Translations under genes and position numbers: made by a program
Virus record (IMG/VR): IMGVR_UViG_3300027896_005002
Coordinates: 62,001-126,000 of that record
Direction: 5' to 3' (one strand)
DNA length: 64,000 nucleotides
Notes under the pieces: model-generated
Told to the model about the DNA's origin: nothing
What the model saw: only the letters and a program-made list of their open reading frames with translations
Databases searched by the model: none
Part shown: positions 1 through 25,377 of the stretch, one piece after another
How the letters are laid out: every line of letters starts with the position of its first letter
How positions within the stretch are numbered: position 1 is the first letter of the stretch

Positions 1-67
1 CCTAGCGGTCTAGGGCAACGGTTTTTGAAGCCGTCATTCGGTGGTTCAAATCCATCCACCCTTGCCA
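1..67 (+). tRNA. tRNA-Gln(TTG), 5' end cut by window edge
   Basis: Anticodon arm ACGGT-TTTTGAA-GCCGT, T-arm GGTGG-TTCAAAT-CCATC, encoded CCA. Confidence 0.85.
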
Positions 68-71
68 TTAT

Positions 72-150
72 CGGAGTGTAGGCTAGACTGGTTTAGGCCA
101 CATGCTTCGGGAGCATGTTCTCAGCAGTTCAAATCTGCTCACTCCGACCA
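72..150 (+). tRNA. tRNA-Pro(CGG)
   Basis: Acceptor CGGAGTG/CACTCCG, loop TTCGGGA, CCA. Confidence 0.93.
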
Positions 151-154
151 AATT

Positions 155-226
155 TGGGGTGTAATTCAGTCGTAGAATGCATGTCTCTGAAACATGATGT
201 CGTAGGTTCAACTCCTACCACCCCAG
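155..226 (+). tRNA. tRNA-Gln(CTG)
   Basis: TGGGGTG/CACCCCA, CATGT-CTCTGAA-ACATG; no encoded CCA. Confidence 0.92.
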
Positions 227-323: not shown

Positions 324-1175
324 ATGGAAAGTATAGACAATTGTCATAATTGTACAAAATGTATTTTACTAGATAGTAAATACTGTTATAAAGATTGTAA
401 GACTTGTAAATCAAAATTCTTATGCTTTACATTTAGTCGAAATAATGAAATTAGTATTTGCTTCGTTGACACAGCTGATAAAAATTATATTGGTACAAGG
501 AATTCAATACAATTGGGTTTATTAGATGAAGCAATTTTTTCAACATCTCAAACTATAGAAAAATATCTGAAATCTATCTTATTATATAATAATAATGACA
601 TCCGTAAAATGGGCGGAAGAAATGGCCATAATATTTTAGATTTGAAAAAAGAAGCACAAAAATGTTTAAATGGATTTGATTTAGATATAACTTATACTGT
701 AGGAAAAACAAAATATTCTTTTTATGAAATAATCGACAAAAATGTTGACCGTTATGGTATAATTTCAGCACCAAACTTTCCTTTTTTATCTTTATTAGAT
801 GATGCAGTTTTTAAAATTCGTCCTTATTGTAGAGACATAGATCTTGAAGCTTTAGTTTATAAAATAGATAAATTAGAAGTTTTGGAAATGATTCCAATTA
901 ATAAATCAATTGGAGGTTATTTAGAAGAAATCATTAAATTTAAACCGACATCGTTTAATAATAAACTTTCATTGCAAAAAAAATGTCTTTATTGGGAAAA
1001 TAAACATACTTTAGCAAGTGGAACGCAAACAATTCCAAACATAAAAAAATTTGGTGAACATTTATATTGGCCAAAATGTTCAAAATGTTTAAATAATTGG
1101 CGAGAAAATCATTATAAAGTAACGCAAATTCAAAAAGAATATTTAAAAACTTTAGACTATAAAATGTGCCTATAG
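324..1175 (+). CDS. HEPN-domain protein with Cys-rich N-terminus
   Basis: Start moved to ATG 324 (SD AGGAGA; the ORF-track start lies inside tRNA-Arg). Pattern ADKNYIGTR..AIFSTSQTIEKYLKS..GHNILDL..RY resembles the HEPN family. Confidence 0.6.
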   Translation: MESIDNCHNCTKCILLDSKYCYKDCKTCKSKFLCFTFSRNNEISICFVDTADKNYIGTRNSIQLGLLDEAIFSTSQTIEKYLKSILLYNNNDIRKMGGRNGHNILDLKKEAQKCLNGFDLDITYTVGKTKYSFYEIIDKNVDRYGIISAPNFPFLSLLDDAVFKIRPYCRDIDLEALVYKIDKLEVLEMIPINKSIGGYLEEIIKFKPTSFNNKLSLQKKCLYWENKHTLASGTQTIPNIKKFGEHLYWPKCSKCLNNWRENHYKVTQIQKEYLKTLDYKMCL

Positions 1176-3675: not shown

Positions 3676-3784
3676 CGTTTCTCCTTTATTTTAAAATGAT
3701 TAAAAAAATAATTCTATAGATATTTAATCACATAAAATATCGAAGAAACTTAAAAATAATGCTCTATGATGCATCATACACAAA

Positions 3785-4504
3785 CTAAATTTCTATGATA
3801 TCTTCATATAAAATAGTAAAATTATCTATAACAACATTAGCATGGAAATGTCCACAAAAATATTTTTTAAATTGAATTCTATTACAAACTTCATCTAAAA
3901 ATTTTGCAGTAGGATCTAAATATTTACTATAATCATGATCATCCATCTCAATAATGTCAACACCTGAAGCTATCATAAATTTTGCAATCATTCCTTGCGG
4001 TAATGTATGAGCTATTATATAATCTACTTTATTTCCATGTATTTCTAAATTAGTTATTGCATAATCCATTTCTTTATAAGAAGGTATCTCATTCCTCCAA
4101 ATACTTACACCTTCAATTCGACTAGCATCATCAACACTTTTTGCACCGCCCATACAAAAAAATGTTTTACTCTCAATCGTATATATCTCACCACGCTTTA
4201 AATAAAAAATACTATCAGATACTACACCAACTTTACCACCAAATTTTTCAATAATTGGCAACTCTGCTAATCTATCATGATTTTCATGATTACCATCAAT
4301 AAAAAGTATGGTAAATGGTTTTTCATTTAACCATTTTTTCCAATAAATTTCTTCTTTATCTGGTTCGTAAAACCATAACAAACCAAAATCACCGGTAATT
4401 ATCACATAATCATTTTTAGTAAGAGATTTACCTTGAGGAAAATTTGTAGTATTTAATTTCCGAATATCTATCGGAATATGTGTGTCACCAGTTATATAAA
4501 TCAT
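3785..4504 (-). CDS. calcineurin-like metallophosphoesterase
   Basis: GDTH, GDFG, GNHE, AHT, GHFH motifs. Confidence 0.9.
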   Translation of the reverse strand: MIYITGDTHIPIDIRKLNTTNFPQGKSLTKNDYVIITGDFGLLWFYEPDKEEIYWKKWLNEKPFTILFIDGNHENHDRLAELPIIEKFGGKVGVVSDSIFYLKRGEIYTIESKTFFCMGGAKSVDDASRIEGVSIWRNEIPSYKEMDYAITNLEIHGNKVDYIIAHTLPQGMIAKFMIASGVDIIEMDDHDYSKYLDPTAKFLDEVCNRIQFKKYFCGHFHANVVIDNFTILYEDIIEI

Positions 4505-5637: not shown

Positions 5638-5717
5638 TGCCCGTGATTGGAATCGAACCAACATTTTCAGCTTCCTTTACGATTATCTGTTTAGGAAACA
5701 GACTCGGCTACACGGGC
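5638..5717 (-). tRNA. non-canonical tRNA-Arg(CCT), rearranged D region
   Basis: GCCCGTG/CACGGGC, 8-nt linker, TCTGT-TTCCTAA-ACAGA, 23-nt segment starting TAATCGTAA, T-arm GTTGG-TTCGATT-CCAAT. Confidence 0.75.
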
Positions 5718-6824: not shown

Positions 6825-7616
6825 ATGGGTACTTCACAAGGTAACTTCAAAAGAAAACTTACTGGATTTTATGATAATGAAGATCGAAAAAAACAATGGA
6901 GTCAAGCTAGAATTAATACAAACAAAAATTCGGTCATTCTTAATCATAAAAAAACAATTCAGCAATTAACAAAATTAAAAATTAATGTTCAATGGTTTGA
7001 ACTACAATTGCAACAACATCGTATTACCACAATTACTAAAAATTTAAAATTACTTGACATTAAACATCCAAAACTAGCACTTAAATATTTAAAATCTTTA
7101 TTAGAGCCAAAACGATTAAAAGAAATTGCAAAAGAAAAACGAACATCTAAAACATCTGTCACACTTAAAAATCGATTGAGAACTGATATCATACTGAAAA
7201 AGAAATATATTAAAAATCTAACAAAGAGAAATCATCATAAATATCGATCAAAAGGTGAATTACGTCTCAAACATTGGTTACAAAAAACTTATCCTTACTA
7301 TAATTGGAAAAGTATACATTTAACTTATAACAATTCAATTTATGAATTCGATATCTATTCAGAACAATATGACGATTTTTTCATTGAATATAACGGCGCT
7401 TGTCATTATAAACAAATTCATAGTTTAGAAAACTTTCAGCGTATTCAATGTCGAGATGAACAAAAAATACAAATAATGAAAGAACTTAATAAAGAATTTC
7501 TAATCATCAAGGACAGCATGTCCTTTGAAGAACAAACAAAAACTGTGACAAAATTCTTTAATTTAAGTAGTAATCTTCAAATTAAAAAATTGGAGGTGCG
7601 GGGACACTTTATCTGA
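6825..7616 (+). CDS. free-standing DUF559/Vsr-like (EDxHD-type) putative homing endonuclease
   Basis: Basic N-terminal half, then SKGE..YEFDIY..FIEYNGACHY..RDEQK. Confidence 0.72.
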   Translation: MGTSQGNFKRKLTGFYDNEDRKKQWSQARINTNKNSVILNHKKTIQQLTKLKINVQWFELQLQQHRITTITKNLKLLDIKHPKLALKYLKSLLEPKRLKEIAKEKRTSKTSVTLKNRLRTDIILKKKYIKNLTKRNHHKYRSKGELRLKHWLQKTYPYYNWKSIHLTYNNSIYEFDIYSEQYDDFFIEYNGACHYKQIHSLENFQRIQCRDEQKIQIMKELNKEFLIIKDSMSFEEQTKTVTKFFNLSSNLQIKKLEVRGHFI

Positions 7617-8231
7617 TGTTTTCACACCAGTGTGGACTATCTCTTCATCCAATTGGATGATGGGCGCTAATAAAGGATTATTGATTGAGTTTCTCACCTT
7701 TTAGTCTCTGCACTTTCCAACCTACAAAACACTCTTTCAGTTGGCTTAGCTCAGGATTGCCATATCATTTTACTGATTTAGGGTTCCCTGAATTCACCCA
7801 TTTTCTTCATCAATTGTTACCAATTGAGTCAACCATTTTGATTGAACCCCGGTCCAGAAAGTTTTCCATGACAATTACTACATGTTTATTCTATTCTATC
7901 TTGAATACTCACTCCGTAAATAGACAAGCGTTCAATGAGTACTTCGTAAGTGTCACTTCGGTCCCCTTCTCTTTTACGCGTTCGGTTGTCCTATCCGTAT
8001 ATAAACAGTTCAAGTTGCTACGGCTCCGCTTAAACTTCGACCGCCTTTATTTAGGCAGCCATTGCTGGTGCCTTTGCGCACATTGCAGCGAACTGCAATG
8101 CGAACTGAGCACCGAAAACTGAACCAATTTTGTTGGCAGTTGTTGTTTCATTGGATGATTTAAGAGGCCAACCAATGAGTCCTCTACATGCAATTATCAC
8201 TTCACCCAATCTGTCGAAACCTGACACCCCC
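7591..8231 (-). ncRNA. ssrA: tmRNA split by a T-loop intron (exon1 7841-8231, exon2 7591-7604)
   Basis: 5' GGGGGTGTCAGGTTTCGACAG; acceptor GGGGGTG/CACCTCC with G3-U70; resume context ACAACT-GCC; tag ANKIGSVFGAQFALQFAAMCAKAPAMAA (8051-8137); T-arm CGGGG-TTCAAT|T-CCCCG. Confidence 0.92.
7605..7840 (-). mobile_element. ORF-less group I intron (IC3-like, 236 nt)
   Basis: P1 TCAAT/GTTGA with U-G splice-site pair; core motifs GGCAATCCTGAGC, TGCAGAGACT, AGATAGTCC; terminal G at 7605. Confidence 0.9.
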
Positions 8232-9438: not shown

Positions 9439-9839
9439 TTTACATCCATAATTGCTAAAGTTGTTAATATAAACATAATTATCAAATGAATTGATTGATC
9501 AATAGCTATTGTTGTATAAAACCAATAATCAGATTGAAATTCTTTTTTCGGATCATGAAACTTTCCATACAATTTCCAAACTACAGTGTCCTGAACAAAA
9601 TGAGTAAAAGTATAAAAAAACGATAAAATCAATGCTGCCCATAAGCAGATCTTAATACTAAACAATATGCCTATACAGCATGCAATAAAAAGAAATGTTC
9701 CTGTGATTGCAGAATGTAATAAGCAAATTAAAGGATTAGACGACTTTGACGTAGCCATTTTTCTTGATTGTAACAGCCAGTCTGATAAAAAATGCGATAA
9801 AATAAGTGTTATAATAAGACTTAACGGCATATTATTCAT
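9435..9839 (-). CDS. DUF3307-like membrane protein
   Basis: LSHFLSDWLLQ..K, H..H..D, DQSIH pattern with TM segments. Confidence 0.7.
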   Translation of the reverse strand: MNNMPLSLIITLILSHFLSDWLLQSRKMATSKSSNPLICLLHSAITGTFLFIACCIGILFSIKICLWAALILSFFYTFTHFVQDTVVWKLYGKFHDPKKEFQSDYWFYTTIAIDQSIHLIIMFILTTLAIMDVK

Positions 9840-9885
9840 AATTTCTCCTAAATTGATATTTTAGTAATTTATAAAGGATGTTAAT

Positions 9886-10176
9886 ATGAAAACAATTCTT
9901 TTTTTAGCATTTCTTTTAACATCTGACTATGAATATCAACTTGATGCTCTTACCAATAGTTGTAATTTGTTATATGGTCATAACTGGCAAATCTGTAAAA
10001 TTTTGACCCTACCTTATGACATCACTGATTCATTAAACTTGCCAAATATTTTTAGTGGCCGAATAATTGACCCAGGATATGTCTGGGAAAACACCACTAG
10101 AGATTCATGTTATCTAGTCGTAAAATATTGGCGTTATGGCATCATAAAATATAAAACTTTTTGGTTCATTAAGTAA
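9886..10176 (+). CDS. hypothetical protein, possible signal peptide
   Basis: SD AAGGA; MKTILFLAFLL start. Confidence 0.5.
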   Translation: MKTILFLAFLLTSDYEYQLDALTNSCNLLYGHNWQICKILTLPYDITDSLNLPNIFSGRIIDPGYVWENTTRDSCYLVVKYWRYGIIKYKTFWFIK

Positions 10177-10351
10177 TTATATAGTACTCGAAAAGTTTAA
10201 TTGGTTGATTGACTTTTTTACATGCTTCTATAGCAATTTTACTTGATATTTTTAGTAAATCTTCAGAGATAGTATGAAGTCCTGCATCCTCAAAATTATT
10301 AGACATTTTTATACATTTGTCTGCTATTTTTAATAAATGTCGTCTTTTCAT
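10169..10351 (-). CDS. hypothetical protein
   Basis: 60-aa ORF with SD-like AAGGA. Confidence 0.45.
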   Translation of the reverse strand: MKRRHLLKIADKCIKMSNNFEDAGLHTISEDLLKISSKIAIEACKKVNQPIKLFEYYIIT

Positions 10352-10371
10352 ACAAATCCTTAAGATTAAAA

Positions 10372-10445
10372 TGGGACTGGTAGGAGTCGAACCTACGACC
10401 TCAACTTTGTAAGAGTTGCATTCTGTACCACTGAAATACAGTCCC
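10372..10445 (-). tRNA. tRNA-Val(TAC)
   Basis: GGGACTG/CAGTCCC, CAACT-CTTACAA-AGTTG. Confidence 0.92.
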
Positions 10446-11436
10446 GATTATTCAAATTTTTAAATTCTCTTACTAAATGTGACATTCTAGTTGTACTAGT
10501 TTGCCACTTATTTGCTAATCTAGAAATTAAACCATATTCATTTATATCTATAACCATAGCTAATTCAACAAAAATTTGTTTTTTCTTATTTAAACGTTGT
10601 GATTCACACGGTGACAATTTTTTAATATTATTAATTTTAAAAAATCGACTTAATTGTCTTTCAGATATAGCAAGCTTACTAGCAATTGTTTTATTATCTA
10701 ATCCTTCATCAACTAATTGAATTATTTCTTTTGCTTTATTAGAAACATCATTAATTACAATTTCTTTTTGTAATTTAATTTCATTTGTAACATTTAAGCT
10801 TTTTGTTTCTAAAAATTGTTTTAATTGATTAATAACTGTGTCAAAATTTTTACAAATAGCTCTAGCATGAATATTTATTACCTTCCAACCTCTTTCAATA
10901 ATATATTTTTCACGATCAACATAATAAGATTTTAGTTCATTATTAAAATAATGAGCATTGCCATTGACTTCTATATCAATTTTTAAATTTATTATTGCAA
11001 AATCCATTCTATAATTTCTGTCAAAATCATCTGGTGTATATTCTTGAATAATTTTTTCATCAACATTACATTCTAACCATTGTCTTAATATTTTCTCAGG
11101 ATATGTTTCTTTTTTCTTTCGCCAAGGATGATTTATTCTAGTTTTTAACCACTTTGATGTACTTTTTGACAATCGTTTTTTAGATTCTTCTGTATGTTGA
11201 ACTGGATATTTCTTTCTAGCTAATATCATTGCTTCACTTAAATTACGTCTATTTTTAATTGCAAGTTTTGTAATAAATCTTGGAAAACGACCTAAATGTC
11301 TTATTTCTCGCAATGATAAACCATTTTTATAATACAATTCTTTTACTTTATCGATGTCATCTTTAGTTACACATTTATGATTTGTAAATGCACCATTATT
11401 TGTAAAAGATCTATTACATTTTTGACATTTTATCAT
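10393..11436 (-). CDS. Zn-finger + DUF559-type putative homing endonuclease + HTH
   Basis: CQKC..H.C N-terminus; TYPE..YRMDF..DIEVNGNAHY..DRE; last codons run into tRNA-Val. Confidence 0.75.
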   Translation of the reverse strand: MIKCQKCNRSFTNNGAFTNHKCVTKDDIDKVKELYYKNGLSLREIRHLGRFPRFITKLAIKNRRNLSEAMILARKKYPVQHTEESKKRLSKSTSKWLKTRINHPWRKKKETYPEKILRQWLECNVDEKIIQEYTPDDFDRNYRMDFAIINLKIDIEVNGNAHYFNNELKSYYVDREKYIIERGWKVINIHARAICKNFDTVINQLKQFLETKSLNVTNEIKLQKEIVINDVSNKAKEIIQLVDEGLDNKTIASKLAISERQLSRFFKINNIKKLSPCESQRLNKKKQIFVELAMVIDINEYGLISRLANKWQTSTTRMSHLVREFKNLNNRDCISVVQNATLTKLRS

Positions 11437-13353: not shown

Positions 13354-13569
13354 TAATTCACCTTGACCTTGATTTGTTTTTGTGTGATCCATCAACTATA
13401 TATCTATAGCGAGGACCATCTTTTGTGTAAATTATTTCATGATCCCGTGCATATTTTTTATCTGCTCTCAATCGTAAAAGTTCGATTTTATAATGACATG
13501 TTAAACAATTTTTCATAATAATGTTGTTCCCATAACCAGGCTTCTGTTTTATCTCTACATTTGTCTAAG

Positions 13570-13724
13570 CCCTCGACCCGTCCGTCATAGCGTTGCTCAC
13601 CCGCTAGGACTGTTTGAGGTTGCACCCTCGGAAGTGTAAACGACCAATTAAGTCTCCTTCCTTAAGCAATAGTGGCCTGAGTTTCCTCACCGATAATCTA
13701 ATATCATCGGCGCGTAGAGTCGGA
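13570..13724 (-). ncRNA. unassigned multi-hairpin structured RNA downstream of tRNA-Thr
   Basis: Closing helix CGACTC/GGGTCG around hairpins CCGATGAT/ATTATCGG, TGAG-GAAA-CTCA, TTAAG/CTTAA, GAGG/CCTC, TAGCG/CGCTA. Confidence 0.6.
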
Positions 13725-13742
13725 ACAACATTTTGAATCAAA

Positions 13743-13826
13743 AGCTGGAGGAGAGATTTGAACTCCCGACGGTGTTTCCACTCCGGATTACAAATCCGGT
13801 GCACTCGACCACTATGCGACTCCAGC
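13743..13826 (-). tRNA. tRNA-Thr(TGT) with long variable arm
   Basis: GCTGGAG/CTCCAGC, CCGGA-TTTGTAA-TCCGG, extra arm GTG-GAAA-CAC. Confidence 0.85.
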
Positions 13827-13834
13827 ATTTAAAG

Positions 13835-13972
13835 TTAGTCATATAAAACAATCGACCGTGATTTTCGAATTGCGCATTGACACTCGTGATCGCCGCGATT
13901 TTCTCAAGACAAGTTTTTCACCTGTTCACCTCACTGACAGTCTGCGCTCAACATACGGTTTTATATGACTAA
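13835..13972 (-). ncRNA. unassigned RNA closed by a perfect 15-bp inverted repeat
   Basis: TTAGTCATATAAAAC (13835-13849) / GTTTTATATGACTAA (13958-13972) around a GC-enriched, internally paired core. Confidence 0.55.
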
Positions 13973-14553
13973 TTTTCCACAACACCTCCTAAGATTTTCT
14001 CGACATAGATTCTATGTGCGAGGTTATTTGGGTTATAAGTAAAATTCATTGTGACATATTGACCTTTATTTGATCTTGGTACATAAGGCTTTGAAATCAA
14101 TTTCAAACCAGCTTCTTCCGGTGTACGACCTCTTTTGATTACAACATTATGCCATCTACAAGCACAAACAGCATTTTCAAAAGAATGAACTGCTCCACCT
14201 CTACTTTTTGGTATTATGTGATCTAAAGTTCGTTCATCCGGTTGACACTTATATTTAAAAGCTTTTCCATCATTCTCAAAATGCCAGTATTGACAAATAT
14301 TTTTATCTCTACGAAATACAGCTTCTTTATTGAAGCCGATTTCTTCTTTCTTGATTTTATATCCGGCAAACTCCAGTAATTGTACAACAAATGGTCTTTT
14401 TAAACGAATTGTGGTGCTGCCAACCTCTTCACGTTCATCAGCAACAAGAACTTTTATTTTTTGTTTTGCCCACCATTTTAATACTTTGTCAAGATTTACT
14501 TCCGCCCAAAACTGATAGTTTCTATTTAATACAACTACTGAAGTCATAGTCAA
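13969..14553 (-). CDS. HNH endonuclease (McrA-like)
   Basis: VVVLNRNYQ, VFRRDKNICQY, TLDHIIPKSRGG..ENAVCACRWHN. Confidence 0.88.
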   Translation of the reverse strand: MTMTSVVVLNRNYQFWAEVNLDKVLKWWAKQKIKVLVADEREEVGSTTIRLKRPFVVQLLEFAGYKIKKEEIGFNKEAVFRRDKNICQYWHFENDGKAFKYKCQPDERTLDHIIPKSRGGAVHSFENAVCACRWHNVVIKRGRTPEEAGLKLISKPYVPRSNKGQYVTMNFTYNPNNLAHRIYVEKILGGVVEN

Positions 14554-19263: not shown

Positions 19264-19344
19264 TAGGAGAGGAGGGATTTGAACCCTCATCTGCCACATA
19301 CCGTTACGATTATCCGCCTTATAAGAGCGGCTCGGTACTCTCCT
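19264..19344 (-). tRNA. non-canonical tRNA-Ile(TAT), rearranged D region
   Basis: AGGAGAG/CTCTCCT, 7-nt linker TACCGAG, CCGCT-CTTATAA-GGCGG, ATAATCGTAACGGTA.., T-arm GAGGG-TTCAAAT-CCCTC. Confidence 0.75.
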
Positions 19345-21078: not shown

Positions 21079-21930
21079 TTATTTCTCAAATTTATAATAA
21101 AAAAACCAACCATTAGCGGATTTTCGTGTACCTTTTAATACTGTTATAATATTTGATGGATAAGTATTTAATTGCTTAGCTGCTTGTTTTTTGTTCGAAA
21201 ATTCTAATTTTTGACCATTTTTTACAGCAAAAAATATTTTTCTCTTAAGTTGTTCAACAAAATCATCATACATTTTTTTAGTTATATACTTAAAAGAAAA
21301 TATCCAATTATTTTTAGATTTAACTTTTCCATGCAAAATACAACTAATAAACCTTTGACTAACCTTAGTATAAATAGATGCTTCGTATTGTGTTTTAAAT
21401 TTCTTTAATTCATTAACATTTCTTGCATAAAAAGCTTTTCCACCATGACACTTACTATGCTTAATTCTTTCTTCAATTTTATTAAACCTTTTATTCTGAG
21501 ATTTACCCTGTTTTTTTCTGGCTTTATCTGACTTAAAATAATTTATTAAACCCAAACTTAAATTTTTTCGTGCTTCTAAATTAAACTTTCCATTACTTCC
21601 GCCTTCTTTTAAATTATATCCAAAAGTTTTATTAGTACTATTAAACTTTTTAATATATTCTTTTTCTTTTTTATCAAGTTCTAATTGTGTATTGCATTTA
21701 CATAATATGTCCCAAGTAAATTTATCAAAACCATATTTCATTAAAGCATTATGAAAATATGATTGATTTTTTGGCTTTTTTATTAAACTTTTCAAACAAA
21801 CTCGATGATGAGCTTTAATTCTACCTTGTAATGATCGCCATGTTTGACCAATATACACTTTATTTGTTAAAATATTTGTAGCTTTATAAATGATACTTTG
21901 TTCATACAAGTATTCATCTAAAATATTCAT
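21079..21930 (-). CDS. GIY-YIG homing endonuclease with NUMOD-type repeats
   Basis: IIYKATN..NKVYIGQT..R; FHNALMKYG; GYNLKEGG; EASI..V / QAAKQL repeats. Confidence 0.88.
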   Translation of the reverse strand: MNILDEYLYEQSIIYKATNILTNKVYIGQTWRSLQGRIKAHHRVCLKSLIKKPKNQSYFHNALMKYGFDKFTWDILCKCNTQLELDKKEKEYIKKFNSTNKTFGYNLKEGGSNGKFNLEARKNLSLGLINYFKSDKARKKQGKSQNKRFNKIEERIKHSKCHGGKAFYARNVNELKKFKTQYEASIYTKVSQRFISCILHGKVKSKNNWIFSFKYITKKMYDDFVEQLKRKIFFAVKNGQKLEFSNKKQAAKQLNTYPSNIITVLKGTRKSANGWFFYYKFEK

Positions 21931-22982
21931 TTACCTGTCTTATCTAAGTATACTGGATCTCGTTGCTTTAAAAATAACCGGCCAAAACCAACAATATATT
22001 TCTCTATCATCGGCTTTATCACTATGCCCTCTCTCAACCTATCGATTAATACACTCTTTCCATTTGAAGCAACTTGGACTGATCGGCCATCTAACCAATC
22101 TTTAAAGATCACATTACTCGCTATAATTGGTACAAATCTCTCTCTCAAACCAATCTTATCCAAGAGAACATCAATCTCTCCAAAATCAATAGCTTTACTA
22201 TTGACTTCAATATCAAAAATCTTTATCGTATGCTTTTTCAAATTATAATAATTACCCTGTACTTTAGGCCCGATTATCTCACCCCGAATCGTAATCGCAC
22301 AATTCGGAAAATAATTGACCTTCAAATTACTCACTGCGTCTATCAAACCATCATTACGAGCGACCTGCCAAAAAGTATGCTCCTCATGATCAGGCAAATT
22401 TATGATAGCATGACCGTGCGTGCACACGCTCATCTTATCATCTACATCAATGAAGACAGCAGCATTAGTGCCTTCTATTTTCTCAGATATGAACACCCTC
22501 TCATTCATCAATTGCTCAACGATATCAGGATGTCTATCGCAGCCTTCAATATCATAATTATAAACCATCTCCGGTCGCTGTACCAAATTACCAGTGCTCG
22601 TCATAACTTCTGGTGCTTCATACTTTGTCACACTCAAAGCAGCTGTTAGATCTACCGGTAAAACGTCCACCTTAAGATAAGCCTTAACACTAGACGCAGA
22701 TGTGACATATCCTTGAGAAATTTCATTTCTTAATTTACAAGTTTTAATTCTATTTTTATCTTTACCTGATAAAAAATTCTGAATATTTTGTTGTAATATA
22801 AATTCCTGAGGCAGTATAGAATCTATTGGAAAATAAACTACACTATCTCCAACTTTATATAAATCTTTTTGGACAACAAATTGATATGTCATCCCTTCAA
22901 CTTGACCAAGTTCCAATTTATCAGCATTTGGATGCGGATAAATTTTAGATATTTTTTTTACTTCCACAGCAAAAGTACTCAT
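21927..22982 (-). CDS. RNA ligase, DRB0094/Rnl2-type with N-terminal OB-like domain
   Basis: HPNADKLEL, YFPIDSILP, EKIEGTN (KxxG), GEIIG..QGN, FDI, REGIV. Confidence 0.9.
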   Translation of the reverse strand: MSTFAVEVKKISKIYPHPNADKLELGQVEGMTYQFVVQKDLYKVGDSVVYFPIDSILPQEFILQQNIQNFLSGKDKNRIKTCKLRNEISQGYVTSASSVKAYLKVDVLPVDLTAALSVTKYEAPEVMTSTGNLVQRPEMVYNYDIEGCDRHPDIVEQLMNERVFISEKIEGTNAAVFIDVDDKMSVCTHGHAIINLPDHEEHTFWQVARNDGLIDAVSNLKVNYFPNCAITIRGEIIGPKVQGNYYNLKKHTIKIFDIEVNSKAIDFGEIDVLLDKIGLRERFVPIIASNVIFKDWLDGRSVQVASNGKSVLIDRLREGIVIKPMIEKYIVGFGRLFLKQRDPVYLDKTGK

Positions 22983-25298: not shown

Positions 25299-25377
25299 CA
25301 GGAGCGAAGAGACTCGAACTCTCATTTTCAACCAAATTACAAGTATATGGTTTTGGAGACCACACTGTTACGCTCCT
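25299..25377 (-). tRNA. non-canonical tRNA-Trp(CCA), rearranged D region
   Basis: AGGAGCG/CGCTCCT-G, 7-nt linker, GTGGT-CTCCAAA-ACCAT, ATACTTGTAATTTGGTTGAAAAT, T-arm GAGAG-TTCGAGT-CTCTT. Confidence 0.72.

Follow-up and report, generated by a model that had tools for sequence, protein, structure and literature searches.

A candidate reduced RNase P RNA embedded in the tRNA arrays of large phages

Introduction

RNase P RNA, the ribozyme that trims tRNAs at their 5' ends, is regarded as a housekeeping component of cells, and its specificity domain (S-domain) normally docks the tRNA elbow. One reduced variant is the type T RNA of Pyrobaculum and other Thermoproteaceae (RF02357), a naturally occurring P RNA with a length of about 200 nt, in which the catalytic domain is kept and the S-domain nearly lost; it is encoded in archaeal chromosomes and acts together with several archaeal proteins. 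Huge phages are known to carry translation functions that include tRNAs, tmRNA and synthetases. Reduced P RNAs are also found in CPR bacteria and in Mycoplasma fermentans; they lack P12, P13, P14 and P18 and can be detected only at scores under the Rfam cut-offs (PMC8172020). The loss of P12 from Thermoproteaceae P RNA is cited in the same paper. RNase P RNA also serves as a marker of genome completeness (PMC8172020). Among viruses, camelpox virus encodes an RNase P-like RNA that does not cleave pre-tRNA in vitro (PMC3001073). The pairing of P RNA with the 3' RCCA of tRNA has been described (PMC11143913), and the same paper cites its refs 83 and 84 for the ability of isolated catalytic domains of bacterial P RNA to cleave pre-tRNA without the S-domain. 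In the openly searchable full-text literature, including the huge-phage survey, no RNase P RNA encoded by a phage is mentioned.

An RNA found in a huge-phage genome fragment is compared here with these systems. It is 209 nt long, i.e. about 55% of the length of E. coli RNase P RNA (377 nt). This RNA can be assigned to RNase P as a reduced form, and we consider it probable that it is active in the phage as a catalytic core by which phage pre-tRNAs are matured, most likely together with the RnpA protein of the host. Its nearest precedents are the inactive camelpox RNA, the archaeal type T RNA and the reduced bacterial P RNAs just mentioned.

Identification of an RNase P-like RNA next to a phage tRNA gene

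The source record, IMGVR_UViG_3300027896_005002, measures 416,029 bp. We analysed one stretch of 64 kb of it (hereafter, the window), which contained 22 tRNAs called by ARAGORN, several tRNAs found only with Rfam, a tmRNA, a group I intron, a T4-type RNA ligase and HNH/homing endonucleases, a gene content typical of a huge phage.

The initial annotation had described an unassigned structured RNA at 13570-13724, lying downstream of a tRNA-Thr, in a GC-enriched island with no credible ORF. This description of the surroundings proved accurate: the G+C content was 0.44-0.51 at the locus vs about 0.32 in the flanks, the interval contained only short, overlapping ORFs, none of them credible, and the RNA was separated from the tRNA-Thr gene by 12 nt. 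The six ORFs flanking the RNA gave weak HNH and DprA-like Pfam matches and nothing else. Folding was strand-specific, as only the minus strand was more stable than its shuffled versions (z of -2.47 for 13570-13724 and -3.13 for the full 209 nt, vs 0.04 for the plus strand).

In gathering mode, Rfam gave no match at all at this locus. A lenient Rfam scan of 13400-14100 yielded a single strong match, the archaeal RNase P RNA model RF00373 (clan CL00002), which aligned end to end (model positions 1-288) with 13522-13730 on the minus strand. The score was 61.3 bits (E = 1.4e-16), below the curated gathering cut-off of 84 bits. Since their scores lie under the Rfam cut-off, such RNA genes escape standard annotation. 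The initial annotation had named cmscan against Rfam and covariation among its checks, and these were indeed the ones that decided the matter. It follows from the match that the RNA reaches 48 nt further at the 3' end (13522) and 6 nt further at the 5' end (13730) than had been proposed; the shorter interval left out the 3' strands of P1 and P2.

The RF00373 alignment retained CR-I (GAGGAAAC), the J5/15-P15 region and CR-V (AACAGAAG..GGUUA), and CR-I, CR-IV and CR-V were aligned. In the specificity domain, 117 model positions were reduced to 39 nt, with no counterpart of CR-II/CR-III (P10/11-P12). That the archaeal model scored best is probably due to the fact that it does not comprise P13, P14 and P18, so that fewer deletions are charged. 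The RNA thus resembles archaeal RNase P RNA in its full-length alignment and its matching core conserved regions, but it scores below the cut-off and lies in a bacterial context (tmRNA, T4-type RNA ligase). The tmRNA and the bacterial-type features of the RNA argue against an archaeal origin.

Anatomy of the RNA

The elements assigned to the RNA are listed below. Nucleotide n of the RNA lies at 13731-n in the window; all elements are on the minus strand.

13743-13826 (-): tRNA-Thr(UGU), 84 nt, 12 nt upstream of the RNA and probably in the same transcript
13522-13730 (-): whole putative reduced RNase P RNA, 209 nt (RF00373 match; 189 bits with the covariance model R1; fold z of -3.13)
13722-13730 / 13522-13530 (-): P1, 9 bp, RNA 1-9 / 201-209, read from the sequence and also present in the MFE fold
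13714-13719 / 13553-13558 (-): P2, 6 bp, RNA 12-17 / 173-178, from the family alignment
13688-13712 (-): P3 hairpin, 10 bp with a 5-nt loop, RNA 19-28 / 34-43, found by folding
13675-13688 (-): CR-I/J3-4 GAGGAAA, RNA 43-49, with the 5' strand of P4; aligned to E. coli M1 57-80
13680 (-): bulged U51 in the 5' strand of P4 (RNA 48-50 and 52-56), equivalent to E. coli U69
13534-13541 (-): 3' strand of P4, RNA 190-197, pairing with RNA 48-50 and 52-56 to form the P4 pseudoknot
13542-13547 (-): CR-V ACAGAA, RNA 184-189, from the RF00373 and M1 alignments; present in 57/57 relatives but part of a search pattern
13671-13674 / 13623-13626 (-): P5, RNA 57-60 / 105-108, from the family alignment
13665-13669 / 13593-13597 (-): P6 pseudoknot, UUGCU (RNA 62-66) with AGCAA (RNA 134-138) in the P17 loop
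13630-13661 (-): mini S-stem, RNA 70-101, in place of P7-P14
13620-13622 (-): J5/15, C109 A110 A111 (RNA 109-111); A110 equivalent to E. coli A248 by comparison with rnpB
13571-13619 (-): P15-P16-P17 arm, RNA 112-160, read from the sequence
RNA 112-115 / 157-160 (-): P15
RNA 121-124 / 148-151 (-): P16
RNA 125-143 (-): P17 hairpin, stem 125-129 / 139-143, with the loop that forms P6
13576-13578 (-): GGU of the P15/16 internal loop, RNA 153-155, equivalent to E. coli G292 G293 U294
13558-13568 (-): J18/2-like strand UUAGACAAAUG, RNA 163-173, counterpart of E. coli J18/2 CUAGAUGAAUG

The RNA retains a catalytic domain of the kind found in type A RNase P RNAs of bacteria, with P1-P5, P15-P17 and the P4 and P6 pseudoknots. 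P4 was found with its bulged U between CR-I and CR-V; the type A helix P6 was found between J5/7 and the loop of P17; and the GGU of the P15/16 loop occurred together with the J5/15 adenosine. The specificity domain consists of a single 32-nt stem, and P18 is gone: P15 runs straight into the J18/2-like strand, and P13 and P14 are absent as well.

The 32-nt stem (mini S-stem) comprised a 5-bp outer helix, a GA bulge, an inner hairpin of 3-4 bp and a conserved 7-nt 3' internal loop, GUUnnnA. By-eye comparison of this loop with the kink-turn and T-loop consensus sequences showed that neither fits.

Comparison with E. coli RNase P RNA

We compared the RNA with E. coli rnpB by direct sequence alignment. 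The stretch made up of CR-I and P4 aligned with M1 57-80 and a 3' stretch with M1 311-365, where CUAGAUGAAUG..ACAGAACCCGGCUUAUCGG in E. coli faces UUAGACAAAUG..ACAGAAGCCUGGUUAUGGG in the phage. U51, A110 and G153-U155 of the phage RNA occupied the places of U69, A248 and G292-U294 of M1. In RNase P, the first of these forms the bulge of P4 at the metal site, the second touches position -1 of the substrate and the third pairs with the 3' RCCA of the tRNA. The J3/4 adenosines, the bulged U, A248, the ACAGAA of CR-V and the CCA-pairing GGU, all active-site or substrate-binding nucleotides of M1, are retained.

Like E. coli M1 (type A, RF00010), the phage RNA has P1-P5 and P15-P17 in the same order, a P4 with a bulged U, a P6 joining J5/7 to the P17 loop, the J5/15 adenosine, the GGU of the P15/16 loop, J18/2 and CR-V. 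Unlike M1, it is phage-borne, has only 209 nt vs 377 nt, does not contain P18, and has a single 32-nt stem instead of P7-P14, i.e. the S-domain with CR-II and CR-III. When run on E. coli rnpB, the covariance model R1 described below did not detect M1 RNA, which we ascribe to the large S-domain of the latter.

Relatives of the RNA in large phages

A blastn search of GenBank phages returned one homologue, in an uncultured phage of 642,428 bp (LR756502.1), and this RNA too gave an end-to-end match with RF00373. Further relatives were gathered by pattern scans of IMG/VR and then with R1, which was built on five sequences. At least 57 distinct full-length relatives of 185-267 nt were found with R1 in IMG/VR contigs and LR756502.1. 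Among the 57 listed, 56 measured 185-229 nt, 20 were on contigs of more than 100 kb and 9 on contigs of more than 300 kb. As the search patterns contained the motifs GAGGAA, AGAYRAAUG and ACAGAA, the invariance of these motifs is partly a matter of ascertainment; the J18/2-like motif UUAGACAAAUG had also served as a search pattern.

Some candidates were rejected. Matches to the pattern GGTGCAACNNNAAACAG were nearly all due to chance, the only real one being on the contig of the window itself. Two contigs from metagenome-assembled genomes (L300 and L301), retrieved with the TAGACAAATG subtype alone in a strict-pattern scan of genome contigs, were taken as chance matches because neither R1 nor any RNase P model recognized them.

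Three loci (L067, with identical copies in L061 and L006) contained a longer relative, at about 850-1170 (-) of L067, with a larger P5-P15 region and a length of about 290 nt as estimated by eye. For this type, Rfam was silent at E<=0.01 and R1 matched the 3' part only. It may represent an intermediate in a reduction series. The relatives in L042 and L064 contained additional hairpins.

Covariation and conserved bases

MAFFT alignments of the relatives (A1-A3) placed P1, P3, P15 and P16 out of register, and we therefore used a model-based alignment of 57 sequences (A4). A4 misregisters P3, P15 and P16 of the window RNA itself, and these were read directly from its sequence. When the RNase P structure was placed on A4, 94.1% of the cells were paired, as compared with 62% for shuffled partners and 34-43% for slid partners, and changes on both sides were observed in 44/53 pairs. 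The initial annotation had made its proposal dependent on the existence of homologs with compensatory changes, and these are present. Its more general idea, that a large phage carries here a structured, conserved non-coding RNA next to a tRNA, was also correct.

The strongest test was provided by P4 and P6, because neither helix was part of the model from which A4 was made. Together they were 96.4% paired, with compensatory changes in 11 of their 13 pairs. For P4 alone, 96.7% of the cells were paired and 6/8 pairs showed changes on both sides. P6 comprised a run of four pairs (97.4% paired) and a separate fifth pair (89.5%), all five of them with compensatory changes; its strands occurred family-wide in nine versions (UUGCU/AGCAA, CUUCU/AGAAG, CCGCU/AGCGG, CAGCU/AGCUG, UAGCU/AGCUA, UUGUU/AACAA, UAACC/GGUUA, GAACC/GGUUC and CAACA/UGUUG).

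The core helices P1, P2, P3, P5 and P15 came in the canonical order, each 85-99.6% paired and with compensatory changes. These were found in all four inner pairs of P1 and all four pairs of P5 (99.6% paired), and P2 (99.4% of cells paired) had both-side changes in 5/6 pairs. The base of the P3 helix was 99% paired, and the values for P15, P16 and P17 were 93.5%, 79% (some rows being out of register) and 88%. The outer and inner helices of the mini S-stem were 96.0% and 96.7% paired, with compensatory changes in both. Two elements that lay outside all search patterns, the bulged U of P4 and the J5/15 AA (A110, A111), were each present in 57/57 of the listed relatives. RGGU was found at the GGU site in 51/57.

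The fold proposed in the initial annotation, in which one closing helix enclosed five hairpins, was judged by mapping the matching MFE fold of the interval on A4. The closing helix was only 51% paired. Three of the hairpins persisted, as P3, the mini S-stem and P17, while two others, a GGCC hairpin (52-55% paired) and a GAGG..CCUC hairpin (32-58%), were not supported. The stem of the GAAA tetraloop was 94% paired, without a single both-side change, and its bases are those of CR-I and of the covarying 5' strand of P4; the fourth base of the loop, which is G or C in most relatives, pairs in P4. Of the two loops that had been considered related (GGGTG..GCAAC), one is the 3' strand of P5 with J5/15 and the other is the P17 loop that forms P6. 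An RNA that had been left unmatched can thus be assigned to RNase P on the basis of RF00373, the core nucleotides and the covarying pseudoknots.

Linkage to tRNA genes and protein partner

A tRNA on the same strand was found within 100 nt in 31/57 of the listed loci, on either side and often at a distance of 0-12 nt. At least one tRNA was present within 2.5 kb in 38/57, and up to 28 in some. This proximity indicates that the RNA is part of polycistronic tRNA arrays. About half of the tRNA genes in the window encode the CCA, which is consistent with the retention of GGU.

No conserved protein neighbour of the RNA was found, the neighbouring ORFs being homing endonucleases and spurious ORFs over tRNAs. 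We also looked for a phage RnpA. The 64-kb window of the 416-kb contig contained no RnpA-like ORF (RNR motif), and a tblastn search of phage records with E. coli RnpA retrieved only records that appeared to be contaminated with host DNA. As neither the window nor the neighbours of the RNA nor the phage records yielded a phage copy, we assume that the protein partner would be the RnpA of the host.

Proposed role and alternatives

The RNA would be transcribed together with tRNA-Thr, and processing of the 3' end of this tRNA would release its 5' end. In arrays where a tRNA lies 3-8 nt downstream, cleavage by RNase P at the 5' end of that tRNA would nearly set the 3' end of the ribozyme. After assembly with host RnpA, the ribozyme is expected to remove the 5' leaders from the densely packed pre-tRNAs of the phage, at least 22 in the window, and the phage would thereby gain a tRNA-maturing capacity that is independent of the host RNase P RNA. 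Because the specificity domain is reduced, substrates would be chosen mainly through the acceptor stem and CCA. We are cautiously inclined to extend this scheme to large tRNA-rich phages in general. These would own an RNase P ribozyme from a family of bacterial-type P RNAs that, at 185-229 nt, would be the smallest in nature. Its S-domain would be vestigial, and it would lie within tRNA arrays and be cut out of them as a tRNA is, which would allow tRNA maturation without host rnpB, perhaps while host RNase P is shut off.

A decoy-like role was reportedly once proposed for the camelpox RNase P-like RNA. The phage RNA could similarly be an inactive look-alike that soaks up host RnpA or pre-tRNAs and stops tRNA maturation in the host. 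The protein-binding side (P2, P3, P15, J18/2) is retained while the S-domain is lost, as such a role would predict, and an inactive viral RNase P-like RNA has a precedent (PMC3001073). A decoy, however, needs no bulged U, J5/15 adenosines, GGU or P6, all of which are kept in 51-57 of 57 divergent sequences, and the RNA resides in phage tRNA arrays that themselves require RNase P. This conservation of substrate-binding and catalytic bases makes a decoy unlikely. The RNA could also be an active ribozyme whose main substrates are not ordinary tRNAs but, for instance, the tmRNA precursor, unusual phage tRNAs, tRNA-like structures in transcripts, or host RNAs. An altered substrate range is conceivable because the S-domain is vestigial, its reduction to one stem being liable to relax substrate choice, and candidate substrates occur in the window (the intron-abutting tmRNA, the 84-nt long-arm tRNA-Thr and tRNA-like matches missed by ARAGORN). 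Against this, the RNA is closely linked to ordinary tRNA arrays across many unrelated contigs, and the conserved GGU points to acceptor stems bearing CCA; we regard this possibility as improbable, to about the same degree as a decoy.

The sub-cut-off Rfam score and the absence of whole domains would also be found in a functionless, decaying fragment of a host rnpB acquired by the phage. Yet every helix shows compensatory changes among the 57 listed relatives, whose core bases are invariant and whose size is consistent (185-229 nt in all but one), so that decay is very improbable. Still harder to uphold is a novel ornate RNA of the GOLLD/ROOL type, unrelated to known ribozymes, to which the initial annotation had drawn attention. 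The RNA is adjacent to a tRNA in a large phage, and a true GOLLD RNA lies about 1.4 kb from one of its relatives (L063), but RNase P elements account for its entire length, and no GOLLD or ROOL match was found in the window at gathering scores or in 13400-14100 at E<=10. Our preferred reading thus remains that of an active, reduced RNase P RNA serving phage tRNAs.

So understood, the RNA can be set beside its nearest precedents. It resembles type T, as the latter is described, in its size of about 200 nt, the conservation of the catalytic domain and the near disappearance of the specificity domain, but it differs by its bacterial type A traits (P6, M1-like J18/2) and by being phage-borne. The RNAs of CPR bacteria and M. 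fermentans, in contrast to the phage RNA, are the sole and essential copy of the cell and mostly retain more of the S-domain; the CCA-binding motif, which is absent in about two thirds of CPR P RNAs, is kept in the phage. With the camelpox RNA it shares a viral origin and a resemblance to RNase P RNA. The camelpox RNA comes, however, from a eukaryotic virus, has no link with viral tRNA genes, and no broad covarying family has been reported for it in the literature that we searched.

If the phage family acts as proposed, 5' maturation of tRNAs would join the functions in translation that are already known from huge phages. The RNA would then be the first catalytically competent RNase P RNA known from a virus and a natural experiment in minimal bacterial RNase P, in which P4, P6, J5/15, GGU and a short stem survive and P7-P14 and P18 are dispensable. 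Compact ribozymes of about 190-210 nt would also be of use for structural and engineering work.

Other RNAs and RNA-processing genes at these loci

The tRNA-Thr(UGU) at 13743-13826 (-) contains an 11-nt insertion in its variable region; in bacteria, it is normally only the tRNAs for Leu, Ser and Tyr that have a long variable arm. Directly upstream of this tRNA, a 146-nt element at 13830-13975 (-), given as 13835-13972 in the initial annotation, is closed by a perfect 13-bp helix (MFE of -39.5 kcal/mol, z of -2.63, G+C 0.43-0.45). Rfam gave no match to it at E<=10, and homologues were found neither in loci L001-L186 nor in GenBank phages.

The tmRNA of the window (7839-8224 (-), 80 bits) overlaps by 16 nt with the group I intron (7613-7854 (-), 91 bits). 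The intron either borders on the tRNA-like 3' end of the tmRNA gene or interrupts it. Matches to the tRNA model of 31-40 bits without an ARAGORN call were found at 5638-5717, 19264-19344 and 25299-25377 (-) and at 1-64 (+). These may be unusual or intron-bearing tRNAs, the match at 1-64 being cut by the edge of the window. A 351-aa ORF inside the tRNA island (21927-22982 (-)) matched PHROG 968 (RNA ligase) with an E-value of 1e-43, as for a tRNA-repair-type enzyme.

At the loci of relatives, the candidate RNA of L063 (8509-8730) lies 1-1.4 kb from a group I intron (9718-9963 (-)) and from the GOLLD RNA mentioned above (10127-10585 (-); 155 bits, above the cut-off), which contains a tRNA at 10447-10518. 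In L068, a phage tRNA array comprises a sub-threshold match to the Y RNA-like YrlA model at 3688-3790 (+) (40.7 bits vs a threshold of 69, E = 1e-5). Two ORFs near relatives of the RNA, L020:1309-1965 (+) and L220:12512-13285 (+), resembled by eye RNA 2'-phosphotransferase (Tpt1/KptA) and tRNA-His guanylyltransferase (Thg1-like).
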